This document shows, piece by piece, positions 288 to 30,010 of a DNA stretch of 32,000 nt. The notes under the pieces are model-generated. The model was not told where the DNA came from. It was given only the letters and a program-made list of their open reading frames with translations, and ran no database searches. Origin of the DNA: Zygophlyctis sp. KS116 (taxonomy: Eukaryota; Fungi; Chytridiomycota). Every line of letters begins with the position of its first letter. Positions within the stretch are counted from its first letter, which is position 1. Location: the NCBI GenBank assembly GCA_054661495.1, contig BAAFSQ010000017.1:1-32000 (forward strand), in the 5' to 3' direction. The translations under genes and the position numbers were made by a program.

Positions 288-3200
288 ATGTTGGCAAAGT
301 TTGAGACAAAGGTGAGTCAACGCTCTTTAAACCAATAGTCAAATAGAGTCAAGGGACTCTCGTTTCATCCAAAGCGCCCTTGGATTCTGGCGTCTTTGCA
401 CAATGGAGCTGTACATTTGTGGGATTATCAGTTGGGTGCGCTCATTGATAAGTTTGAAGAGCATGAAGGTCCAGTGAGAGGTGTCTCCTTTCATTCTTCT
501 CAGCCTCTTTTTGTTTCTGGAGGAGACGATTACAAAATAAAGGTTTGGAATTACAAGTCTAGAAAATGTCTTTTTACCTTGCATGGGCATATGGACTATG
601 TACGTACAGTCTACTTTCATCATGATTTACCGTGGATTATTTCTGCTTCAGATGATCAGACAATTAGAATTTGGAATTGGCAGTCTAGGTCATGTTTGGC
701 AATTATTACAGGTCATAATCACTATGTCATGAGTGCAATGTTTCATCCAAAAGAAGATTTGATTATAAGTGCAAGTTTAGATCAAAGTGTTAGAGTCTGG
801 GAATTTGGAGGTATTTATTAAAGTCTAAAGGATAGGATTGAAAAAGAAGCATTCTACGGCTGGTGGAAATAGTCTTGATGCAGGAATGATGGATCCACGT
901 TTACAAAGCATGAATGCGCAATTAAATCAAGATCCTTTTGCAAATACAGATGTTATGGTAAAGTTTGTCTTGGAAGGGCATGAAAGAGGTGTAAATTGGG
1001 CTGCTTTTCATCCAACGGCTCCATTGATTGTAAGTGGAGGGGATGATAGAGTTGTAAAGATTTGGAGAATGAATGGTATGCTCATTACTTTACTGAAATC
1101 TAAAGAATACAAGGCTTGGGCTGTTGATACTTGTAGAGGACATTATAATAATGTGTCTTGTGCTCTTTTTCATCCAAAGGCAGACTTGATTCTTTCGAAT
1201 TCTGAAGATAAAACTATAAGAATATGGGATTTAAACAAGAGAAATACTATTCAGACATTTAGGAGAGAAAATGACAGATTTTGGATGCTTGTTGCTCACC
1301 CAGAGAATAGTTTATTTGCTGCCGGTATTTTTGAAATAATTCATAAAAAGGTCATGACAATGGATTTGTGGTCTTTAAGTTGGAAAGAGAAAGACCTGCA
1401 ATGACTATTCACCAGAATCGATTGTTTTATGTAAAGGATAAAGTAATCAAGGTCTTTGATATGGATTCCGGCATTGATTCTCCTCTATTGACTTTTCGTA
1501 GGGGTACTTTAGGACAAGTGCCTCCTCCAAAATATCTTTCTTATAATCCTTCTGAAAATACTTTACTAATGACATCTGATCATGAAGGTGGAATCTACGA
1601 GACTTATCCTTTGCCATCAGATATATCCGGTGGGCCTTATGAAGCAACATTTGATCTACGTCGTGGTCCTGGGAAAAATGCATTGTATATTGCTCGAAAC
1701 AAATTTGCTGTTTTTGAAAAGGGGGCAAATGTAAAATATTTTAGAATGTACTAATCTTAAAAGGTTGTAAAAATAAAGGATAGTAACAATTCACAAATCA
1801 AAGAGTTCACCCCACCAGATGATTCACAAGAGCTTTTGTGGGCCGGTCCTCGCCTTTTTTACTTTGCTACTCCTTCTGCAGTTGTTTTGTATGATGCAGA
1901 AACAAAGTCTGTAGTTCATGAATTGCAAATGAGTGGTGCCAGATATTGTTCCTGGTCAAAAGATGGGAATTTAATAGCTCTTATTAGTCGTCACAGTATG
2001 TTTTAGTGAAATTAAATTTAAGTGGTATTTTTGGCAACTAAAAATCTGGATCAACTCGCATTTGTTCATGAAACTATGAAAATCAAAGGAGGTGTATGGG
2101 ACGATATGGGAGTGTTTTTATACTCAACATTGAATCATGTGAAGTTTGTTTTACCCAACGGCGACAATGGGACCATTAAAACACTTGACGAACCACTATA
2201 CCCTGTCCAGAGTTTAGGAAATAAGCTAATTTCTTTGAACAGGCGATCAGAAATTGTTACTATATCATTTGATCCAACCGAATATCTATTCAAATTGGCA
2301 TTAAGTATGAAGGATTATGACCGAGTTTTGCAGATAATTAGAAACTCGAATTTGGTTGGTCAGTCAATCATCAGCTACCTTGAAAAAAAGGGATATCCTG
2401 AAGTTGCCTTGCAGTTTGTTAAAGATGTAAAAACAAGGTTTGAACTCGCTTTGGAATGTGGAAATTTAGAAGTTGCATTAGAAAGTGCTAAAACGATTGA
2501 TAAAGATGCTATTTGGATTAAACTAGGAGAAGAAGCTATAAATCAAGGAAATCATATGGTGATTCACTTTAGTACTCATTTTTAGATTCTAGAAATGGTC
2601 TATCAACGCACCAAAAATTTTGATGCGTTATCCATGCTCTATTTGATGACTGGAAATATACAAAAACTGAAGAAAATGCTGAAAATTGCTGATGTTCGTG
2701 GGGATATAATGTCACATTATCATAACGCCATGCTCTTAGGAGATGTAGAAGATCAAATTCAATCCCTGAAGGGAGTAGGACAACTATCACTTGCATATCT
2801 AGCTGCTAAAACACACGGACTAGATGATGAGGCTGCTTCAATTTTAGAGGCTGTCGGCTTGGAGGAGCTTCCTCAACTTTTACCCAATAGTCAATTACTG
2901 AAAGTACCTACACCCATAAATCAGCTTCCAGATGAAAATTGGCCTTTGCTACCTGTGTCCAAGAATATCTTCGAGAGCGGACCTGGTGCCGTGACCGTAC
3001 CAATGAATTCTAAAGATAGTCCAAAGAATAATATTATTGTACCAGATGCGAATGGGGTCGACTGGGGGGATGATCTAGAGTTTAAGTCTGATAATATATC
3101 TACCAATGTGCAGTCTATTGCAGCGGCCAGTTATGAAATAGATGATGAAGATGATGAAGGATGGGGGCTTGATGATGATCTGGACATCCCGGCCATCAGC

Positions 3201-4259
3201 CCAGTTTCGAATGGAAATATTACAGCATCTTCCACTAATGGGGGATTTGTCAAGATTCCTAGTAATGGAGTCTCTCTTACAGATCATTGGGTGAGAAATT
3301 CCGGCCTTGCAGTAGATCATTGTGCTGCTGGCTCGTTTGAATCCGCTATGCAGGTATACATTACATGACTAATTCTTTTAGCTATTGAATCGTCAAGTCG
3401 GTATTTCCAACTTTGCCCCTTTAAAGGAATATTTCCTAATGATATGGATGGCATGTAGAGCTACTGTACCAACTATTCAATCTGTGTCATCCCTGTACGT
3501 CCCAATTCAGCGTGTTTCAGAAAAAAACGACGCTTTGCCTCTAGTCCCCTTCAACTTTGCCGCATTGGAAAGCAAACGCCGGGAAGCGTACGAATTTACT
3601 ACTAAGGGTAAATTTCTAGATGCGTTATCTTCTTTCCGAGAATTATTATATCTTATTCTATTCACTGTGGCTGGATCTCCTGCGCAAGCTAACGAGGTAC
3701 TACCCCATGTCTTAAATATTAGATTAAGGAAATGGTACAAACTTGTCGTGAATATATACTTGGAATGCGATTGAACTTGGCTCGTAAAGACGCCAGCCCT
3801 GAATCCTTAAAAAAGGGTCTAGAAATGGCAATTTACTTTACGCATTGTAATATGGAGTCTGTTCATTTGTCACTGGCGCTTCACTCAGCCATGAAAACTA
3901 TGCATAAAGCCAAAAATTTTGCTACAGCTTACCTTTTAGCGGGCCGTCTCTTGGAACTTAATCCTCCTCCCCAAATAGCGCAAACTGTAAACTTTTGTTA
4001 ATTAACTATAAATTAGGCAAAGAAAATACAAATTCATTGTGAAAAAGCTAGCGTAGACGAGGTTCCTATGGATTATGACCCATACAATCCTTTTGTAACC
4101 TGTGGAGGGTCTCTTACTCCAATTTACCGTGGTTCTCCTAGTATTTCATGCCCATTTTGCGGTACCCTCTATCTCCCTGAATACAAATCTTCTATTTGTA
4201 TAAGTTGTGAAATTGGTCGTGTTGGGAGTTCTGGAACCGGCTTAAGAAATACTAATTGA
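288..4259 (+). CDS. COPA: Coatomer subunit alpha (alpha-COP), 11 exons
   Basis: MLAKFETK^[15 protein letters not shown] start, WD40 repeats, coatomer WDAD region, C-terminal YDPYNPF..CPFCG. Introns 312-338, 811-835, 1076-1105, 1325-1350, 1731-1763, 1996-2022, 2559-2585, 3354-3381, 3697-3722, 3987-4016 restore one frame. Confidence 0.97.
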
Positions 4260-4267
4260 TTTTATTA

Positions 4268-4867
4268 TTAATCAGAATCAAAAAGTTGGTCTTGATCATT
4301 ATTCTTTTTCTGAGTCAATACTACAGGAATGTTAGAGACACCAGGAAGTGCAAATGAAGATCTATCAGTCGGTGAAAATGGCGGAGGTACGGCAGATACT
4401 GGAGTTGATTGAGTAGAATTCATTCTCTCTCTTGCTCTAGCAAACAACTCTTCTTGTGACTTTAGTAATTCTTCAGTTGATAGCCCAGAATTCTCCAACC
4501 TAAAAGGCTTCCTTGCCGTTTCCTTTGTAGTTTTCTGAAAGAGTTCAGACTCTTGAGATACCGCCGTTACAAATCCTTCAAATCCAAGAGACTTTAGCGC
4601 CCCAATAACATGATCACTCAATATTGTCTTCTTTTTTTCCTGTTCACAAACAACATTGGCTTCGGACGAGAGTAAATGCACAAATTCAAGACTAAATTCC
4701 CCAATCATATCCTTTGCTTCCTTTGCCATTGTAACTCCGGTCGGTAAAAATGAAGATATCAGTTTATTCAGAGTAGCTAGCATAAGTATTTGTAATTTAC
4801 CTTTTGGAAGCACAGGTTCTTCATCATTAGCAGTAGATTTATAGTTTATGTCTTGATCGGAATCCAT
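4268..4867 (-). CDS. NCB2: Negative cofactor 2 beta subunit (Dr1), histone fold
   Basis: LPK^ATLNKLI ... EFVHLLSSEANVVCEQEKKKTI..HVIGALKSLGF ... EELLKSQEELF; in-frame 24-nt intron 4777-4800. Confidence 0.93.
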   Translation of the reverse strand: MDSDQDINYKSTANDEEPVLPKGKLQILMLATLNKLISSFLPTGVTMAKEAKDMIGEFSLEFVHLLSSEANVVCEQEKKKTILSDHVIGALKSLGFEGFVTAVSQESELFQKTTKETARKPFRLENSGLSTEELLKSQEELFARARERMNSTQSTPVSAVPPPFSPTDRSSFALPGVSNIPVVLTQKKNNDQDQLFDSD

Positions 4868-4924
4868 TGTGTTTGTATTATACAAAGGTTTTCGTCAGTC
4901 AGCGCTACACCCAACGCTAAGTGA

Positions 4925-6762: not shown

Positions 6763-8736
6763 TCAATCCTTAGAAGTCGTGGCAACATCATTTGGGAGTC
6801 CTAACAATCTACAAATGGTGTTACACTTATGGGACTTGAAGAAATCAAATATTCCATGCTTTCCTCTATCAGTCCTGCCATATATGTGTTTTCGATTAGA
6901 ATCTATAGAATTATGATGTATCACGGGATCTGTAAATTCAAACTTTGGTTGCTTTGGATTACTTGTATCATAAACTCCTTGTAAATCACATACCAAGAGT
7001 TGCCTCTTGCTTTGATAATAAGAGTAATGAGAAAACGCTTGCGGCAAATCATCCGGTTTAAAAGATTCAGCCAAAACCGGATGTCCTTCTGAAGCTGATG
7101 ATCGTCTGACTAACATTACATTGTCTTTTGGATTTGAAATTTGCAAGTGCTCAAACAGTTCATTTAGATTTACAGAATATTCTCTATCTTGTCCTGCAAC
7201 AAAACCATCATTTCCATTCCATTTTTTATATTTTCCCGGATCCAGCATTTTCTCAACCAACACTCCCCTTACAAAACCATCTCCCTGCGACATTTCATAA
7301 ATTTCGCAATCCAAAAACGTGATTGTTGGAAGCTCAATTGTTGCGAATCGTGCTCTTGCTTTCAAGTCCTTATTAAAAGAATCCGCAATCGACTTTGCCT
7401 TTATCTGAGTCTTACAAAATGTCTTGTGGAAATTGATCTTTAAATTTTCATCTTCAACATATCTGCTTTCTTTCGCAACCAATTTCAAACCAGCAAATTT
7501 ATAATTACCCTTTGAAAGAAATATAGCCTCATCAAATTGAAACACAATCCGTTCAGCTCCATCCCCAAACGGAAGTTTTCGTATTACAACAGCAGAAGAT
7601 AGATTTGAAGCCAAACATTCATGAAATATCCAATCATTATCTTTTTGAGACCACCGAACTCTTGCCAAGTCATTTGTATAGAAATTCCAGCCCTCTTTTG
7701 AAAGTTTACCAACTTCCATATTATATTCTTCTTTTCCATAAATTCTTAGAGCACCTCTAGTAGATGTTAGACTTAAACTTGTTCTAGTAGCACTTAATCG
7801 TGTACTTAATGATGAGATTGCATTTCCTAGAGCCCTTGCACATAAATCTGATTTCTGAAATATTCCAATACAACCAGGAAGATTAAACAATTTTGGAGCA
7901 TTAGCCATTGATTCTAAAACAGAAAAATCCGTATTTTGAGCAAACCCAATAGTTCCTAGAGTCAGTCTTGATCCAAAACTTTCATATAATCCCTGAACCC
8001 GTCTAAGAACAGCCATATTAATATCTATATGACCTTGATCACTTGGTTTTCCATCCGATAAAAATAACAATAAGAGAGCACAATTCTTATTTGCTTTATC
8101 CTTGTTTAGTACCTTTTCCGCCATCAAGAGACTTGGAATATAATTTCCATGAGAGTAAGCACGATTCGTATGCCTTAAATCTAATATTTTGTTGAATAAA
8201 ACATTAGTAATTGGTTCTCTATAAAGTAAAATATTCCCTTCATCTCTCATTTCAATTAAAGAAAGAACATCTGTGCCTCTTATCTGACCAGAATCCATTT
8301 GAGCCCCAACAAAATCCAATGCAATTGTCCCATAAACTGCATCTATTCTAGATTTATAATGATCGACATCACTAGTCCTCATCGAACCACTATGATCAAT
8401 CACAAGAACTGTATGAGAAGTACAAAGAGCCGGTTCCTTGTGCAACTTTTTCTGTAACAAATCATGACTGGCAACATCATCAGATCCCAATTGAATCTTT
8501 TGAATTTCTAGCGGCAAAACATAACAAGTAATTTCCTTTTTACAAGAAGCATCTGTAATATAAACGATATTAGCAAAAGTAAATTTCCATCTTGGCTCAC
8601 CAGTTCTTGGATCGGGATGAGCTCTCGTTTTCTCTCCATATTGTACTGCAGCTAATAAATCCTTTTTCCCTATTTGACGTTGAGCTCTTCTATCTCTTCC
8701 ATGCACACTAGAGATCAGCGTCCCTTGCAATTGCAT
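6763..8736 (-). CDS. vWA-domain alpha-kinase (eEF2K/MHCK family) with N-terminal DUF4258-like domain; intronless
   Basis: vWA MIDAS VIDHSGSM and LFLSDG; alpha-kinase motifs PFGDGAERIVF, VAKE, KKWNGNDG, PQAFSHYSY, LLVCDLQGV, FTDPVIH, YGRTDRG..G..FF..HKCNTIC. ATG at 8736 (ORF track starts at upstream GTG). Confidence 0.9.
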   Translation of the reverse strand: MQLQGTLISSVHGRDRRAQRQIGKKDLLAAVQYGEKTRAHPDPRTGEPRWKFTFANIVYITDASCKKEITCYVLPLEIQKIQLGSDDVASHDLLQKKLHKEPALCTSHTVLVIDHSGSMRTSDVDHYKSRIDAVYGTIALDFVGAQMDSGQIRGTDVLSLIEMRDEGNILLYREPITNVLFNKILDLRHTNRAYSHGNYIPSLLMAEKVLNKDKANKNCALLLLFLSDGKPSDQGHIDINMAVLRRVQGLYESFGSRLTLGTIGFAQNTDFSVLESMANAPKLFNLPGCIGIFQKSDLCARALGNAISSLSTRLSATRTSLSLTSTRGALRIYGKEEYNMEVGKLSKEGWNFYTNDLARVRWSQKDNDWIFHECLASNLSSAVVIRKLPFGDGAERIVFQFDEAIFLSKGNYKFAGLKLVAKESRYVEDENLKINFHKTFCKTQIKAKSIADSFNKDLKARARFATIELPTITFLDCEIYEMSQGDGFVRGVLVEKMLDPGKYKKWNGNDGFVAGQDREYSVNLNELFEHLQISNPKDNVMLVRRSSASEGHPVLAESFKPDDLPQAFSHYSYYQSKRQLLVCDLQGVYDTSNPKQPKFEFTDPVIHHNSIDSNRKHIYGRTDRGKHGIFDFFKSHKCNTICRLLGLPNDVATTSKD

Positions 8737-8814
8737 CACAGTGACAATCCCAAGAGAAATTTCAAGTCAAGGACAATAAAAGGCCTTTTACTCACTAAAA
8801 TATCTGTAAAACTC

Positions 8815-9532
8815 TTAATTTATTCTTGTAAATGCATTCTTTAGTCTCCATATATCTCTAGAAAAACTAACCAACTGCTTACCATCTGCATCTGTCCCAC
8901 TATAAGCAACAAAAACCTAAAATTTACAATATAAAATACATACTGTAATATTTGCATTACATCTATTTGTAGTATCACATTGATAACCACAAATTTCATC
9001 AATTGTTAATGATGTAACATCACCAATACAAGTTGTCGGAGCCCAATCAAATTTAGTAATTACACCTATAATTATTTTTAGAGAAATATACCTTTATCAA
9101 CATTAATTAATAGAGTCCGATTAAAAACCACAAAATTTCCACGATTATTGTCTCTATCCTTGAATTTCTTTAAGCTAGTTTTTTTAATTCCAGATGAAGC
9201 CTTGAAACTAGTCACCATTTGAACTTGAGTATATTCATCATCACTCTTTGTCAATAGTCCAGTTGCTATAGTCGCGTTAAATCAATGTAATTACAACCAG
9301 GAATTACCAATTGAGCATAATTATCAACTTCTACAGAGAATGCAGTCACAAATTTACTAGAGTTTTTTGTATTAGTTACCATCATGTAAATCAATTGTTC
9401 TTCTGATTTTCTAATTAATACAGATTTTGAAATATTTGGTAGAGCATACGACGTAGAAGGAGAAATTACTTTAAAATCATCAGACTTGATCATTGAGATA
9501 ATCATTAAAATCAAGATGTAGTATTTAATCAT
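8815..9532 (-). CDS. Uncharacterised secreted protein, 4 exons
   Basis: Hydrophobic signal-like N-terminus MIKYYILILMIISMIKS; introns 9266-9294, 9066-9091, 8917-8943 give a continuous ORF ending ...CNANITVFVAYSGTDADGKQLVSFSRDIWRLKNAFTRIN*. Confidence 0.75.
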
Positions 9533-9994: not shown

Positions 9995-11852
9995 ATGGAA
10001 ATTGCAAAAAATGTAAAATTCAAACTAAAAGAAGGGAAATCTGTCCAAGAAATTCTAGACTTGATTTCTTGTGATTCTAGTAAATCTCTTTCAGCAAAAA
10101 TGAAGTGGATTTCAAGTTTATTTGTAAAAATTGGAGTTTTTTCACTAGAAAATCTCTTGATGCAAAGGAGAATGGAAAAGAAAATGGAAGAAAATTCCAG
10201 TCATTTAGATAAAGTCAGAAATTCTGGTTTTTTTGTAAAAATATTTGAAAATGAAATTTCAACACAATGCGTGAAAATGGGATTTAGACTGGAAATTGTA
10301 AAAGACTCTTTGATTTCTGAAAATTATCTCAAAATTGTAAAGGAATTACTAGAAAAAATTGAAATTTACGAGTCTAAAAGGACAAATATAGGATCTTCTC
10401 TAGGATCTTCTCTAGGATCTACAGGAAAAACTAAAGATGCTCCAAAATCAAATAATACAAATAATAATGTTGGGCATGTACACGATTCTGATTCAATCAA
10501 GGGATCAGTTAAAACTAGAAAAATAATTCATGATATTCCAAAAACACTAGAGAAATCTGGGCAGTTGCAAAAACTCAATCAGTTGGAATCAGAAGTTACG
10601 GAAATTAAAAATGACTACTTAAATTTAACTAAAAAATATAATCAATTAGAGTCGTTGTATAAGGAGGCTTTGGAATTTTCAAGTGGGAAAGAATTGCAAA
10701 AAAAGCGTGTATTTCTATTAAAATCTCAGAATATTCAACTTGCAAGATATTTAAATGATACTGTGAATGAGCTCAATTCTAAAGAAGGTTTTGTGCATGA
10801 AGTAGATGAAGATATATACAAGATTAGAGATATTTTAGCTAGAACATTGGGTTTAGTATCTTCAGGAAAACCTGAAAAGGTTTTAAATGGGATTTCAGAG
10901 CTTAAATTAACTTGTCAGTATTTAGAGGCTTTACAAAGGCAGATTCATAGGAGGATAAAGGATCATACTCGAGAGACAAGGATAGAAGACAAAACTCCGG
11001 ATTTTGAGTTTATGTCTGAATTTATTAATACTCCTAAAAGTCCTGAAAAGGTATCTCTAGCGGATATTTGCTCTGGAAGTATTGCTCATTTGAATTTAAA
11101 GCATGTTTCTCGTTTAGAATCACAGTTGCATACATTATATGATTGTAAAGCTATTATTTTTACTTAGTATAATAGGTTTATTGGAACTTTTGTATTCTAT
11201 AAATTCTTGTTTAATCCCAAATATTCATTCTGAAATATCAGCTCATCAGCAAAGTGTAATAGACAAGGCTCAAAAGGAATTAAGTAGCTCAATTAATTCT
11301 CTACTCTCACTATCTGTTTTGATTCCTGCAGCACCATATCCGAAACTAGACACTGTTAGATTGGTTGGGTATCCCTCTCTGCCTTCAAAACAAGATTTAA
11401 TAAGCAGCCTTCCTTCTTGCTCTGCTGGTGTAAAGTAAGGCTTAAAGATTTAACTTTAGAGCAAAAATGGGAGAGTTTTGGGATCACCTGCTTCATGGAT
11501 TAAATTCATTTATAGATCACAAGAACTCTGAATTTGTTGCGATTTCAAAAGAATTGGAATTTCATAAAAACTTGTACCGACAATATGTAGGCAGATTTTT
11601 AGATTGATGATATTAGAATCAAAAAATTGGAACCGTTGTTGAAAGCTTAGAAAAGAAAAAGAGTGATTTAGATTCAAATCTCGAAGGTATCCATCTTCCA
11701 GTTATGTTATAGAAGTTATTGTTCCTTTGGAAAAAATCAGAGAGAATATTGCATCTTTAGAGTTTAATCCAGTTAAAGTTGGGGATTTTCTCGCCTCAAC
11801 AGATAAAGCACTGGAGAATGTGCTTAATTGTTTGCACAGAAACAATTTGTAA
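9995..11852 (+). CDS. Coiled-coil protein of unknown function, 5 exons
   Basis: 390-aa ORF continued via introns 11145-11175, 11435-11459, 11587-11616, 11687-11712; true start uncertain. Confidence 0.7.
10391..10420 (+). repeat. Short coding tandem repeat (GGATCTTCTCTA)x2.5
   Basis: ggatcttctcta ggatcttctcta ggatct, encoding GSSLGSSLGS. Confidence 0.8.
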
Positions 11853-16832: not shown

Positions 16833-16879
16833 GGGCAATAAATTTGATTTTTTTCTAATTTTAATTGGAAATTTTAAAC

Positions 16880-17945
16880 ATGACGGCGACAATGACTTGT
16901 ACAAACAAGGGATGTGGACAAGATTATTCAGATGGACCTTGTAGTTATCATTCTGGCGTTCCAGTCTTTCATGAGGGACTCAAGGGATGGTCTTGTTGTT
17001 CAAAGAAGACGGTGGATTTTGATGAATTCTTACAAATCAAGGGATGCACTCTGGGAAAGCATTCTACAGAGACACCAAGACAAGATCCTGTTCCTGAAAA
17101 ACAGACTCTGAAAGTTCCTACAAAAGTTGAAGATGGTATATTATTTAAATTTATTTTAGGAGTTGAAGTCTATGGAGCGTCTGCTGGAATTGAGAAAATA
17201 TCATTACAATCTCCCCCATCAACCTCAAGCAAGGAAATTATAAAGGTTGAGGAACCGGTCAATGATCCAGAAAATGCAGATATTACAATTGGAACAATTT
17301 GCAAAAGAAAGAGTTGCGGAAATGTGTTTGATGGTAAAAGGGAGAAAAAGACTTGCATTCATCATCCTGGGACTCCAGTCTTTCATGAAGGAAGTAAAGG
17401 ATGGTCTTGTTGTTCTAGAAAAGTATTGGAATTTGATGAATTCTTGAAAATCAAAGGTTGCACTATTGGAAATCATCGTTATTTGGATACGGCTACTTCT
17501 GTTATGGTAGAATGTAAGAGGGATTGGTATCAAACACCAGATAAAATTATAATTTCTTTTTTTGCAAAAAAAGCTGATAAGGAGAAAACAAGTATAGTTT
17601 TTGAAGAGTCAAAGGTATATTAAAAGGTTTAATCTTTTAGCTGTCTGTGAATGTAACATTTATGGATGGTAAAAAAAGTTTTTGGGAAACTGATCTCTTT
17701 CAACCGATTCTTCCTAATGAATCATCTTTTCAGGTATTGACTACAAAAGTTGAAATTATACTGAAAAAGGCAAATGGTCTGTCTTGGGCATCTATTGAAC
17801 CAAATTCAAATGTTACATCGTGGACTACATTTGGAACTAAAGGTATTTTTTTAATTTAAGAAATATAGGGACTGTAGGGACTGTTGGTGGTAAGGAAGCC
17901 ATGATTGCAGGGGATGCCCCAATTTCATTTTTAAAGAATCACTAA
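16880..17945 (+). CDS. CHORDC1: CHORD-CHORD-CS domain Hsp90 co-chaperone
   Basis: Two C..KGC/KSC...H.G.PVFHEG.KGWSCC..FDEFL.IKGCT.G.H domains, then CS domain DWYQT; introns 17136-17159, 17615-17640, 17843-17868. Confidence 0.93.
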
Positions 17946-20374: not shown

Positions 20375-22531
20375 ATGCAGATGATGACTGAAGAAGTTGC
20401 TAATGCCCCCGCTGTTCCTGGCGAGGGAAAGGTAAACCATAAAACTGCTGATCGTTTAGCCTCGAAGACTCTTGGGCTATGGAAATACTGATCTGGTCTC
20501 TACTTTTCCCGATGCTTCCTCTCTCTACGAAAACTTCTTGCACGGAGTTAAAGTATCAGGGGATAATTCATTCTTGGGAACTAGAGCTGTTATTAATGGA
20601 GCGCCCGGACCTTTTGTATGGCAAACTTATAATCAGGTCTACAAAAGAGTAAAGAATCTAGCGTAAGTTTTGATTAGATCTTAATTTAAGATCTGGATTG
20701 ATTGGATTAAATCTTAAAAAGGATGCTGCTATAGGTCTTTTTAGTGTCAACAGAGCTGAATGGGTATCTTTATTTTCCTTTATGGTATAGATGATGGGTG
20801 AGCATGCTTGCTTCATGCAAACTCTTACTACAGTTCCTCTTTATGATACTTTGGGTGTTGAGGCGATTGGTAATCATCAGAATATCTTACAAAATAGAAT
20901 ATATAATCAATCAAACGAAAATGACTACAATTCTAGCTACAATGGATAAAGTCAAGGTGCTTTTAGGAATTGGTTCCAAACTTCCAACATTGAAGAATGT
21001 TATATTCATGGATACTATCGATGAGGATTTAGTCAAGAAGGGGAAAGAATTTGAGTGGAATATGCTGTCCTTTACTGATGTTGAAGCTAGTGGGGCTGGA
21101 AGTCCTGTTGAACCCAATCCTCCCACTAAGGATGATATAGCTACTATTTGCTATACTAGTGGTACAACTGGTCTTCCAAAAGGTGTTGTTTTAACTCATT
21201 TGAATATTCTGTCTTTTGCGGCTGCATCTTTGGAATTGATGAAGAAGGGAAAATTGAAAAAGTTTGGAAGTAGTGACTCTTATTTATCGTATCTTCCTCT
21301 TGCTCATGTTTTTGAAAGATGTGTTGTTACAGCCTTGGTTTATGGTGGTGCTCAGATTGGTTTCTATCAAGGAGATACTTTGAAGCTATTGGAAGATGTT
21401 GCAGAATTAAAGCCTACAATCTTTGCTTCTGTTCCTCGTCTCTATAATCGAATTTATGACAAGGTAATGTTGGGAGTGAATTCTGCTGGTCTCATCAAGT
21501 CTTGGCTATTCAATACAGCTTACAAAGCGAAAAAGGCTAATCTTGAGAATGGTGTAGTAACACACTTTTTATGGGATTGGTTAGTATTTGGAAATGTTCG
21601 CCAAAAATTGGGTGGTAGAGTTGAATTAATGATGTCTGGAGCAGCCCCTATTTCACCTGATGTGTTGGACTTTTTAAGAATTTGCTTTTCTGCGACTGTC
21701 CAAGAAGGGTATGGACAAACCGAGACATCTGCTGGAATGACTTTAGTAAGAATTTTAACCTGACTTTAGACAACTGCAGATGATGTTAGTTCTGGACATG
21801 TCGGAGTTCCTTTCCCCAATTGTGAAGTTAAACTTGTAGACTTGCCAGAGATGGGATATACTTCAGAAGATAAACCATATCCCCGTGGTGAAATATGCTG
21901 TCGTGGAAATAATGTATTCCGAGAATATTACAAACTTCCTGATAAAACCGGTAATTTCTTTACCACATTAAAATATAGCTGAGACCTTGGATAAAGATGG
22001 ATGGTGTCATTCTGGAGATGTTGGACAATGGGATGAAAAAGGTCGTCTCAAAGTCATTGATCGAGTCAAGAATATGTTTAAGCTTGCTCAGGGAGAATAT
22101 GTTGCTGCCGAAAGAATTGAAACAATTTTGACAAAACATGAACTTTTATCACAAGTTTTTGTCTATGGTGATAGTTTACAAGCTACTTTAGTTGGTATTG
22201 TTGGTAATTTTCTAGTTTTTTTAATTATACAGTTCCTGATCCTGATGTAATAAAGCATTGGGCTCTTTCTAAAGGGTTTTCAGGAAAGTCTGTTGCAGAG
22301 TTGGTCAAGGATGATACTTTCCGTAGCGCTGTTCAGAAATCTCTGCAAGATCATGGAAAATCCAATGATCTTAAAGGATTTGAATGTCTCAAGTCTGTTC
22401 ACTTGGAAATGTCACCCTTCTCTGTTGAAAATGGACTTTTAACTCCTACATTTAAATTGAAGCGTCATGATGCTAAAAAGTATTATAAAGCTCAGATTGA
22501 TCAAATGTATGCAGAACAGGCGAAATCTTGA
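20375..22531 (+). CDS. Long-chain fatty acyl-CoA synthetase (ACSL1/5, FAA2-like)
   Basis: [60 protein letters not shown]; introns 20432-20459, 20663-20690, 20764-20790, 20870-20897, 21746-21769, 21951-21978, 22204-22232. Confidence 0.96.
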
Positions 22532-24092: not shown

Positions 24093-24108
24093 TTAAAATT
24101 TGTTTAAA

Positions 24109-25304
24109 ATGGGAATTCACGGCCTCACAAAAGTGATTGGAGATCATGCACCGCTAGCTATTAAAGAAGGAGATATTAAAAACTTTTTTGGAAGGAAAGT
24201 AGCGGTTGATGCGTCAATGTCTATTTACCAATTTCTTATTGCTGTCCGACAACAAGATGGACAACAATTGGTAAACGACGCTGGTGAAACTACTTCGCAC
24301 TTGATGGGATTGTTTTATAGAACTATAAGAATGGCTGAAAATGGAATAAAGGTCTTGTATTGCTTTGATGGGAAGCCACCAGACATGAAGTCTTCTGAAT
24401 TGGCTAAAAGAGGAGAAAAAAGATTAGAAGCTCAGAATGCAGTTGATGCCGCTACAGAAGCAGGGGATGTTGAAAATGTACAAAAATTTGAGAAGAGAAC
24501 AGTCAAAGTTACTAAAGAACATAATAAGGAATGTCAAAGACTCTTGGGTTTAATGGGAATTCCATTTGTTGAATCTCCAGGAGAAGCAGAGGCTCAATGT
24601 GCTGCTTTAGCTAAAGCTGGGATTGTTTATGCTGCTGGAAGTGAGGATATGGATACATTAACTTTTAACTCTCCTTTTTTACTTCGTCATTTAACATTTT
24701 CTGAAGCTAGAAAGTTGCCAATTATGGAAATTTCTCTTGAAAAGGTTTTAAAAGGTTTAGATTTTAGTATGGATCAGTTTATTGATTTATGTATTTTACT
24801 TGGTTGTGATTATTGTGATTCAATTCGTGGTATTGGTCCTACTCGTGCTGTTCAACTTGTTCGTGATCATGGATCTATTGAAGGAGTAATAGCGGCTTTA
24901 GATCCTAAAAAGTATAAAATTCCTCAAGATTGGCCTTTTGAAGAAGCTAGAAGACTCTTTAAGAATCCTCTAGTCACTCCTCCTTCAGAACTTGAAGTAA
25001 TTTTATAGAGATTTTAGTAATATTTTAGATTAAATGGAAAGATGCAGATGAAGAAGGGATTGTAGAATTTTTATGCAAAGAAAAACATTTTAATGAAGAA
25101 CGTGTAAGAAAAGCAGTACAAAAGTTTGCAAAAGCAAAGGCTAGTGGTACACAGGGTAGACTTGATTCATTTTTCAAAGTATTACCAAAGACTGGTGATT
25201 CTAAAAAGAGTGATGGGACTGAAAAGAATATCAAGGCCAAGAGTGCTGGAAAGAGCAATGCAAGAAAGGGCGAGGTGGGAGGCAAACCAAAGAAAAAGAA
25301 ATAA
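24109..25304 (+). CDS. FEN1: Flap endonuclease 1
   Basis: [37 protein letters not shown] box QGRLDSFF; intron 24997-25028. Confidence 0.98.
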
Positions 25305-28595: not shown

Positions 28596-30010
28596 TCAAC
28601 ACATGCCCTGACTTGACATTTCTTGCTTTACTAAAGCAAAAACTTTGAGCATTTTCCTGCGGGCTCCTAGAGCTGCAACACCCTTATCAATCAAATCTTG
28701 ATCAGTCAAATCAATCATATCCTGCCAAATCATACTCTCAAAAATTGGAGTGTATTTATGAAGCCTTAGACTTCGAAGCCATGAAGGAATGTCTAATATT
28801 TTAATTTTATAAAATTACCTGATAAAGCAGAGAGATCGACTTGGTCTGGAATCTTTCCTTTTTCCTTGTGAGATGCTCCAGCAGATCCACTTCTCTTAGA
28901 GGACTCACCCACAGATCCACTTCTTTTTGAGGAACTGCGGTTTGAGACTCGGTCATCATCCGACGTCTCAAACTTTGGAGAAGAAGGTGAGGAACCTTGC
29001 CTCATTCTAGTTGGGGATGGTTTAGAAGATCCTGAATATTTTTGTGCGTGTGGTGTCACTAGTGACAGCGGTCGGAATGCCAAGTCTCCCATTAATAGAG
29101 GAGAATTGGCTGCATCAATATTTTGTTGTGATTTTGTAAGATTTGGAGGATGAGATAGTTGAGTACTGGGCAAAGAAGGCCCTCCAGGCGCCATTGTAGT
29201 TAAAGGAAATCCGCTGTTTGATGTGGCTTTTACAGACCAATCCGCTGAAGATATTGCTTCATCAGCTGGAGTCGACGGCCTATGAATTATTGTGGGGATC
29301 CCGCTCAATGAACTATTTGCTGCATATGAATGAATTGGAGAAATGTGATTCCCTGAATTTATGCTATTTCTAACACTATCCAGTGGAGATCCCAATCCTT
29401 CCAACTCCTCAAAATTTGGATTAGAGTATCTATCATATAATCTTCTTGAAGGTCTTGAAGGTGCGGTAGGAAGCATTGGAGAGATTACATTCATTCCTGG
29501 AAAGTATGAGTCTTGATCATTAACTGCAAGTGTTGGATCTGCAGATCTAGGACCAGCCATTCCCATTGTGGTGGAAATAGATAAATTGGATAATTTCTTT
29601 TGAAGTTTGGGAGATGATCGAAAATTTACTGGATTTTCCTTCTCTGAGGAGACTCCCAGTCCAACTGATTCCTTTCCTGACATTTGTTGTAGAAGAGTAA
29701 GAAAGAATTTAACTTGCTCTGAATTTAAGTTTCGGACAAGAGAAAACAATGCAGTTGTTTTTTCTGATTCAGATAGTACTTCGAACCATCCCTGTATAGC
29801 AGCCAACTCTTCTTTGAATGCATCATCCACTTGGGAGGCATGGATTTGAGATAATGTACCCTCATAAAGAGTCAAATCTTCAAACCATTTGTCAATTACT
29901 AAGTTGTTAGGGGGAAAATTTAGTCTACCCTTTGATTCAGGCGCATTGAAGGATGGTAGTGAATCTGAAGTGTGCCGGGGAAATCGGAAATGTGGACCTT
30001 TTCTATCCAT
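28596..30010 (-). CDS. VTS1: SAM-domain RNA-binding protein Vts1/Smaug
   Basis: [17 protein letters not shown] region and SAM domain [30 protein letters not shown] after intron 28793-28818. Confidence 0.93.

Follow-up and report, generated by a model that had tools for sequence, protein, structure and literature searches.

Locus and Gene Model

The window analyzed here is a 32,000-nucleotide stretch of DNA from the chytrid Zygophlyctis sp. KS116 (GenBank assembly GCA_054661495.1, contig BAAFSQ010000017.1, positions 1 to 32,000 of the forward strand), and the element in question is one minus-strand gene within it. The gene encodes a 657-aa protein in which an N-terminal domain (N-domain) related to the bacterial toxin family DUF4258/Ntox49 precedes a vWA domain and an alpha-kinase domain. 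Computation establishes the identities of these domains, the predicted fold, the conservation of residues, and the phyletic spread of the family. A sequence-only reading of the window had proposed that a DUF4258-type domain is fused here to vWA and alpha-kinase, and the fusion was borne out by Pfam ranking, hhalign, hidden Markov models (HMMs) scored with controls, and AlphaFold2 (AF2) modeling combined with fold searches. The gene and its parts are as follows.

6763..8736, minus strand: intronless complete coding sequence, vWA alpha-kinase with N-terminal BECR domain, 657 aa (open reading frame (ORF) list and sequence)
8515..8718, minus strand: BECR-fold domain related to DUF4258/Ntox49, residues ∼7–74, short strand, two helices, four strands (sub-threshold Pfam, hhalign, AF2, fold searches, ESM Atlas)
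8437..8484, minus strand: ordered linker helix between the BECR and vWA domains, residues 85–100 (full-length AF2 model)
7846..8424, minus strand: vWA domain, residues ∼105–297, with the metal-ion-dependent adhesion site (MIDAS) D114-x-S116-x-S118 ... D228 (sub-threshold Pfam, MIDAS conservation, AF2, Foldseek)
6775..7689, minus strand: alpha-kinase domain, residues ∼350–654 (Pfam)

The ORF list and the sequence place the first ATG at 8736-8734, from which residues are numbered as Met1, and the stop codon at 6763-6765. The ORF runs uninterrupted over 6763..8739 on the minus strand and would give 658 aa if read from a GTG, and an in-frame TGA stands 10 codons 5′ of the first ATG. The gene model is supported by the full-length homologues, which span 97–100% of the 657-aa protein, and by a 98% identical 657-aa protein with the identical start on a syntenic metagenome scaffold.

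Kinship of the N-Terminal Domain with DUF4258/Ntox49

The N-domain residues quoted in the sequence-only reading are present, and the stretch from Ser10 to Tyr72 corresponds to 8521-8709. The range given there, 8545-8736, takes in the start of the domain but ends at residue 64, so that the last β-strand with Glu68 and Thr70 is left out. Among the 120 full-length homologues listed, nearly all conserve the first ∼85 residues, and the eukaryotic alignment used below comprises 105 N-domains from full-length homologues. For the isolated window domain, the best Pfam match is DUF4258 (PF14076; 20.6 bits, E 5.7e-4), which also scores 16.8 bits with the whole protein. The same family ranks first for 73 of the 105 eukaryotic domains (best E 1.7e-5), and the next family matches only 12, a pattern beyond chance. 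Weak and inconsistent Pfam matches to Lenti_VIF_2 and MotB_plug were dismissed as noise.

We compared the eukaryotic alignment with one of 32 bacterial domains that score over the PF14076 threshold, drawn from 151 Chloroflexota genomes and five other genomes; this set was substituted for the weaker tail of a large profile search, of which the 150 best matches were listed. The two alignments match in hhalign with 87.6% probability (E 3.5e-6), and at lower stringency the alignment runs end to end. It pairs His12 with the invariant bacterial His (H4), Arg20 with a conserved Arg, and Thr70 with the nearly invariant T69, such that the final eukaryotic strand E-I-T-s-Y lies against the bacterial I-I-T-v-Y. 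The bacterial HMM scores all 105 eukaryotic domains, with a median of 12.5 and a maximum of 17.7 bits, whereas reversed sequences reach at most 2.0 and shuffled ones at most 4.9 bits. In the reverse direction, the maximum for the eukaryotic HMM is 14.3 bits, and the controls reach 0.0 and 2.0 bits. The kinship thus holds at the level of profiles in both directions and extends to the invariant His and the conserved Thr.

A word-based search with residues 1–90 returned only five close relatives, a profile word search returned short eukaryotic fragments and no bacterial proteins, and tblastn against plasmids gave chance-level matches only. Sequence searches of the PDB, run with both the domain and its profile, gave no genuine match; the lone hit, a de novo designed TIM barrel, was set aside as spurious. 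A language-model atlas search scored below 0.9 and serves as a lead only.

Predicted Fold

An AF2 model built from the 105-domain alignment (predicted local distance difference test (pLDDT) 91.9) folds into a short strand, two helices, and four strands. When 48,161 PDB representatives were scanned exhaustively with VIA-align, ranks 1–28 were all BECR-fold toxins (Z 4.7–6.8), including a Salmonella toxin–antitoxin toxin (7vd7), BrnT, colicin E5, CdiA-CT NC101, RelE, ParE, MqsR, YoeB, YafQ, HigB, and colicin D; by Z score, the colicin-like neighbors are not distinguishable from the RelE- or BrnT-like ones. The sequence-only reading had called for AlphaFold and Foldseek on this domain, and BECR toxins came out on top as it had expected, with CdiA-CT NC101 and colicin E5 the leading Foldseek matches at a weak E of ∼0.02. 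The best nonself match in the ESM Atlas falls in a cluster that is 96% PF14076 (template modeling scores 0.71/0.64 over 75 aligned residues; root-mean-square deviation 2.7). On predicted models, then, the domain fits the compact α+β core of the BECR fold, in which helices precede a four-stranded antiparallel sheet, and the nearest structures are BECR toxins.

It could be argued that the resemblance to DUF4258 is convergent or accidental, the domain being an unrelated small α+β module. The Pfam score lies below the gathering threshold, the hhalign probability is 87.6% and not above 95%, no PDB sequence matched, and the Foldseek E is only ∼0.02. However, independent lines concur, namely, two-way profiles with controls, the top Pfam family, top structure ranks occupied entirely by BECR folds, an Atlas cluster of DUF4258, and matching His and Thr positions, and we consider a chance resemblance very improbable. 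Each line is modest alone, but in combination they render homology of the N-domain to DUF4258/Ntox49 very likely. Because the window protein fails the Pfam threshold, we describe the domain as a divergent eukaryotic branch of the DUF4258/Ntox49 lineage and not as a strict PF14076 member.

vWA Domain, Linker, and Alpha-Kinase

The alpha-kinase domain is recognized directly by Pfam (Alpha_kinase, PF02816; E 7e-37, 127.8 bits against a cutoff of 21.3). Two Pfam families fall just short on the vWA domain, VWA_2 at 26.2 bits against a cutoff of 27 and VWA at 21.9 against 23.8. This region of the AF2 model alternates β and α elements, and the full-model Foldseek matches include the vWA-containing proteins ITIH1 and PitA; both are in keeping with the Rossmann-like fold of vWA domains. 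Across 96 homologues, the MIDAS residues D114, S116, S118, and D228 show either invariance or conservation of at least 90%. The kinase carries K422, D584-L-Q586-G587, T602-D603-P604, and the zinc ligands H636/C638/C642. In the same 96 homologues, conservation is at least 90% for K422, D584, Q586, G587, D603, P604, H636, C638, and C642, so that the protein belongs with the alpha-kinases and the earlier statement that the kinase Lys, DLQG, TDP, zinc-binding, and MIDAS motifs are intact is correct. The alpha-kinase was confirmed by Foldseek on the full model, with matches to MHCK-A (E 1.5e-14), EhAK1, eEF2K, and the TRPM7 kinase.

The full-length AF2 model has a pLDDT of 88.5 and a predicted template modeling score of 0.79, with block means of pLDDT of 94–96 over residues 81–110, which contain the linker helix. 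The ordered helix and the full-length model hint at a defined arrangement of the domains. A complex predicted between the N-domain and residues 84–657 scored 0.00 in a run without controls, and this value speaks neither for nor against intramolecular docking.

Conserved Residues and Putative Active Site

The N-domain is the best-conserved segment of the protein, with a mean identity to the query of 0.50 compared with 0.42 for the vWA domain and 0.38 for the kinase. Its most conserved positions, and the two elements that carry the proposed site, are listed below.

8701..8703, minus strand: His12 codon at the start of the first helix, predicted catalytic residue; invariant in 105/105 eukaryotic domains and matched to the invariant bacterial His
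8524..8535, minus strand: last β-strand motif E68-I-T70-C71 (family consensus E-I-T-S)
Conserved in 100% of the 105 domains: His12, Gly34, Thr70
Conserved in 99%: Gly13, Arg16, Arg17, Arg20, Glu68
Conserved in 93%: Thr61
Conserved in 91%: Asp62

His12 and Arg16/Arg17/Arg20 sit on the first helix, and Glu68 and Thr70 sit on the last strand. In a 2026 preprint, DUF4258 and Ntox49 are treated as one and the same family and assigned to the colicin-like branch of BECR proteins, in which the active site lies on the pre-α helix and the last strand and usually consists of a His plus Lys/Arg; the characterized members of this branch mostly cut tRNA (bioRxiv 10.64898/2026.08.28.747851). The conserved cluster of the window family is where that preprint places colicin-like active sites. 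For Ntox49 itself, which they defined, Zhang et al. 2012 predicted a BECR-type RNase marked by a conserved His and Lys/Arg (PMC3482391). The eukaryotic N-domain is strongly basic (median isoelectric point (pI) 9.7, net charge ∼+4.6), whereas the bacterial set has a median pI of 6.0.

These observations bear on a second possibility, that the BECR domain has lost nuclease activity and now binds RNA, ribosomes, or translation factors, or regulates the protein intramolecularly, so as to steer the alpha-kinase toward a substrate that could be, for instance, a component of translation, as it is for eEF2K. The BECR fold includes non-nucleases such as the ParE gyrase inhibitors (PMC11980606), the second bacterial His is not kept, and a high pI would suit binding as well as catalysis. 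In addition, the top Foldseek match, CdiA-CT NC101, was solved in a ternary CdiA/CdiI/EF-Tu complex, and eEF2K is among the nearest structural relatives of the kinase. Against this, the His, Glu, three Arg, and Thr residues conserved at 99–100% make up a classic acid–base and transition-state set at BECR active-site positions, and such conservation over distant eukaryotic lineages exceeds what is usual for a docking surface. We regard this possibility, the chief alternative to our preferred explanation, as rather unlikely.

Family Distribution and Phylogeny

The architecture survey proposed in the sequence-only reading revealed a three-domain family spread over fungi, algae, and other protists. 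There are more than 250 full-length homologues, most of which span 97–100% of the window protein, and a HMMER profile search of 1.84 billion representatives yielded 964 matches at E ≤ 1e-3, 575 of them at E ≤ 1e-10. Ten profile matches were sampled for odd length or domain position; four have vWA plus alpha-kinase, four have vWA only, and two have no Pfam match, which fits complete or fragmentary copies of this architecture. The carriers include chytrids, oomycetes (Aphanomyces), brown algae (Ectocarpus and others), diatoms, chrysophytes (Epipyxis), green algae (Chlamydomonas, Pyramimonas, Cymbomonas), the dinoflagellate Polarella, Paulinella, and Chrysoparadoxa. They represent several eukaryotic supergroups, free-living algae among them. 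The 120 best full-length matches include no protein from Dictyostelium, animals, or Dikarya.

Maximum-likelihood analysis places the window protein together with four of the five chytrid sequences (support 91/97), and the brown algae and the oomycetes are each monophyletic. Polarella falls with prasinophyte green algae, Chlamydomonas with Paulinella, and the diatoms in two places; paralogy or transfer, perhaps from alga to alga, has likely occurred within the family, judging from the sequence tree.

The occurrence of the domain in eukaryotes is not wholly new because Zhang et al. 2012 tabulated Ntox49 in stramenopiles and viridiplantae (PMC3482391, Table 2), although the portion of their text at hand makes no mention of vWA or alpha-kinase. 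As the earlier reading had stated, vWA-alpha-kinases are described without the N-domain; the literature searched gives vWA and kinase only (PMC2827801, PMC1420674). Nor did that literature contain a paper joining alpha-kinase with BECR, RelE, colicin, or DUF4258. We found no description of the three-domain fusion in the literature searched, in which it appears to be undescribed.

Genomic Neighborhood

The assembly totals 12.7 Mb in 1,175 contigs and contains one copy of the vWA alpha-kinase gene. The window is AT-rich (∼30–40% GC), and the following neighboring ORFs were identified by their matches.

2595-3368: COPI alpha
4268-4885: NF-YB-type histone fold
16865-17623: CHORD
20798-21763: AMP-binding enzyme
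24100-25008: XPG/FEN1 nuclease
28793-30010: Vts1-like RNA-binding protein

A WD40 protein gene is also among the housekeeping genes around the kinase gene, and this compact, ordinary eukaryotic neighborhood argues against contamination.

A third explanation would make the gene a self-contained conflict or immune system, in which the vWA and kinase domains detect an invader, for instance a virus, and free the toxin RNase for an abortive-infection shutoff of translation, or else an effector directed at a host. The sequence-only reading had favored a single-gene conflict or stress system and also raised the host-directed role. vWA domains recur in bacterial conflict systems, the N-domain comes from toxin–antitoxin and polymorphic-toxin families, the bacterial homologues examined pair with MqsA-type antitoxins, and the family tree is partly incongruent with taxonomy. 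Ntox49 is moreover found in secreted toxins (PMC3482391). The gene itself points the other way. It is a single-copy gene without diversification, its toxin domain is the slowest-evolving part, its neighbors are housekeeping genes, and the widespread family includes free-living algae. By sequence, the 657-aa protein has no signal peptide or delivery domain. Pfam detects no antitoxin family in it, the adjoining genes are eukaryotic, and no cognate antitoxin or immunity partner, adjacent or fused, accompanies it as would be expected of a type II toxin–antitoxin system. PADLOC, NCBIfam, and PHROGs gave no meaningful match. Neither the conflict-system nor the host-effector proposal was supported, and we judge such a role improbable.

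Three further features of the surroundings were recorded. The metagenome scaffold with the 98% identical gene copy (GROS21-1_SAMEA9561430_METAG-scaffold_1230, 11 kb, environmental) has the same NF-YB-like and COPI genes adjoining it, and the organism or a very close relative was therefore present in that sample. Adjoining the kinase gene, a 390-aa ORF at 9995-11167 (plus strand) has no Pfam family at E ≤ 0.001 and a translation with many Lys, Glu, Leu, and Ser residues; a lineage-specific protein is one possibility. Between 8740 and 9900 on the minus strand, 5′ of the kinase gene, are several short ORFs of 53–97 aa with very tight intergenic spacing, which could be the exons of a single gene or several small genes in their own right; the one at 9266-9532 opens with a hydrophobic, signal-peptide-like stretch.

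Comparison with Known Systems

Bacterial DUF4258/Ntox49 toxins resemble the window domain in predicted fold, order of elements, the invariant N-terminal His, an Arg on the first helix, and the Thr of the terminal strand. They differ in context, being either stand-alone toxins of ∼75–130 aa followed by an MqsA-type antitoxin or the C-terminal tips of secreted toxins, whereas the window domain is N-terminal in a 657-aa cytosolic protein that lacks an antitoxin. A canonical example is found in a Chloroflexota genome (G041, L128:1480-1988), where a DUF4258 toxin gene (90 bits) comes first and its stop overlaps the start of the gene for an MqsA-type zinc-ribbon antitoxin of 75 aa. Compared with the bacterial domains, the window family is far more basic (pI 9.7 versus 6.0), adds Arg16, Arg17, and Glu68, does not have the second His, and falls short of the Pfam cutoff. 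The tRNases colicin E5/D and CdiA-CT are among the nearest solved structures to the N-domain at a sequence identity of ∼10%, but, unlike the window protein, they are exported antibacterial toxins with immunity proteins.

Ire1 and RNase L each unite in one polypeptide a sensor, a kinase or pseudokinase, and an RNase, which upon activation cleaves cellular RNA. The window protein is like them in logic only and not by homology, and the coupling of its domains is hypothetical. Those proteins combine a classical protein-kinase fold with a C-terminal, all-helical KEN RNase, whereas here an alpha-kinase is combined with an N-terminal BECR domain.

Dictyostelium VwkA, which is Ca2+/calmodulin-activated, was compared by its description, and only its layout is shown to be common to the window protein, with vWA followed by a C-terminal alpha-kinase. 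Alpha-kinase reviews give VwkA only as vWFa (aa 121–233) plus kinase (aa 398–592) (PMC2827801, PMC1420674). A vWFa motif that starts at residue 121 leaves an N-terminal stretch of similar length (PMC2827801).

Proposed Function

The explanation that we prefer, although we rate its chances only at about even, is a domesticated, kinase-coupled RNase in which the BECR domain would be the effector, the vWA domain a sensor of a ligand or partner, and the alpha-kinase a switch. The single copy, the slow evolution of the "toxin" part, the lack of a signal peptide or immunity partner, and the sharing of the family by free-living algae and fungi together point to a domesticated enzyme. We infer the catalytic activity, the substrate, and the coupling between domains as follows. 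The protein would be a cytosolic three-domain enzyme with an N-terminal BECR domain, a metal-binding vWA domain, and a C-terminal alpha-kinase. The BECR domain would have descended from the bacterial DUF4258/Ntox49 toxin lineage and been domesticated in an old, widespread eukaryotic family. The vWA domain may bind a ligand or partner via its MIDAS site, and the alpha-kinase may phosphorylate, or autophosphorylate, and together with the vWA domain gate the RNase site. That putative site, which would be metal-independent, consists of His12, Arg16/17/20, Glu68, and Thr70; the RNA that it cleaves would be a conserved cellular one, tRNA being the first candidate. The earlier suggestion that translation might be shut off through RNA cleavage is a reasonable one.

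Several points weigh against this explanation. Gerdes 2025 lists DUF4258 (∼6,000 proteins) among the BECR toxins as a family whose activity is unknown and which is "undescribed in the literature", with no member characterized experimentally (PMC11980606), and for this reason the RNase activity is argued from superfamily membership alone. The Pfam score of the isolated window domain, 20.6 bits, lies below the 25-bit gathering cutoff, and the match covers only positions 2–34 of the 71-position profile. Structural Z scores of 5–7 count as "middling" on the calibration of the tool. The second His, common on the third strand of the bacterial domains (R-P-L-H-V-V), is not retained in the corresponding eukaryotic strand (I-V-Y-I-T-D). 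Finally, the family tree is congruent with taxonomy only in part, with algal lineages partly mixed.

More tentatively, the family may constitute a class of kinase-coupled ribonucleases that spans the eukaryotes and stands as a third type next to Ire1 and RNase L. In it, a bacterial DUF4258/Ntox49 toxin would have been captured onto a vWA-alpha-kinase, would be switched by a MIDAS ligand and alpha-kinase (auto)phosphorylation, and would cut a conserved RNA such as tRNA to tune translation. We consider this broader proposal possible but doubtful.

Current Pfam annotation misses the N-domain in every family member examined. In hundreds of eukaryotes, the architecture joins a toxin family without a characterized member to the widespread vWA-alpha-kinases, with the toxin-derived site as the best-conserved part, and it gives both a concrete, testable function. 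If the proposal is true and Dictyostelium VwkA has the domain, this could account for the unexplained effect of VwkA on the amount of myosin II protein. In addition, the family would be a clear example of eukaryotic signaling that has taken in and domesticated a bacterial toxin RNase.

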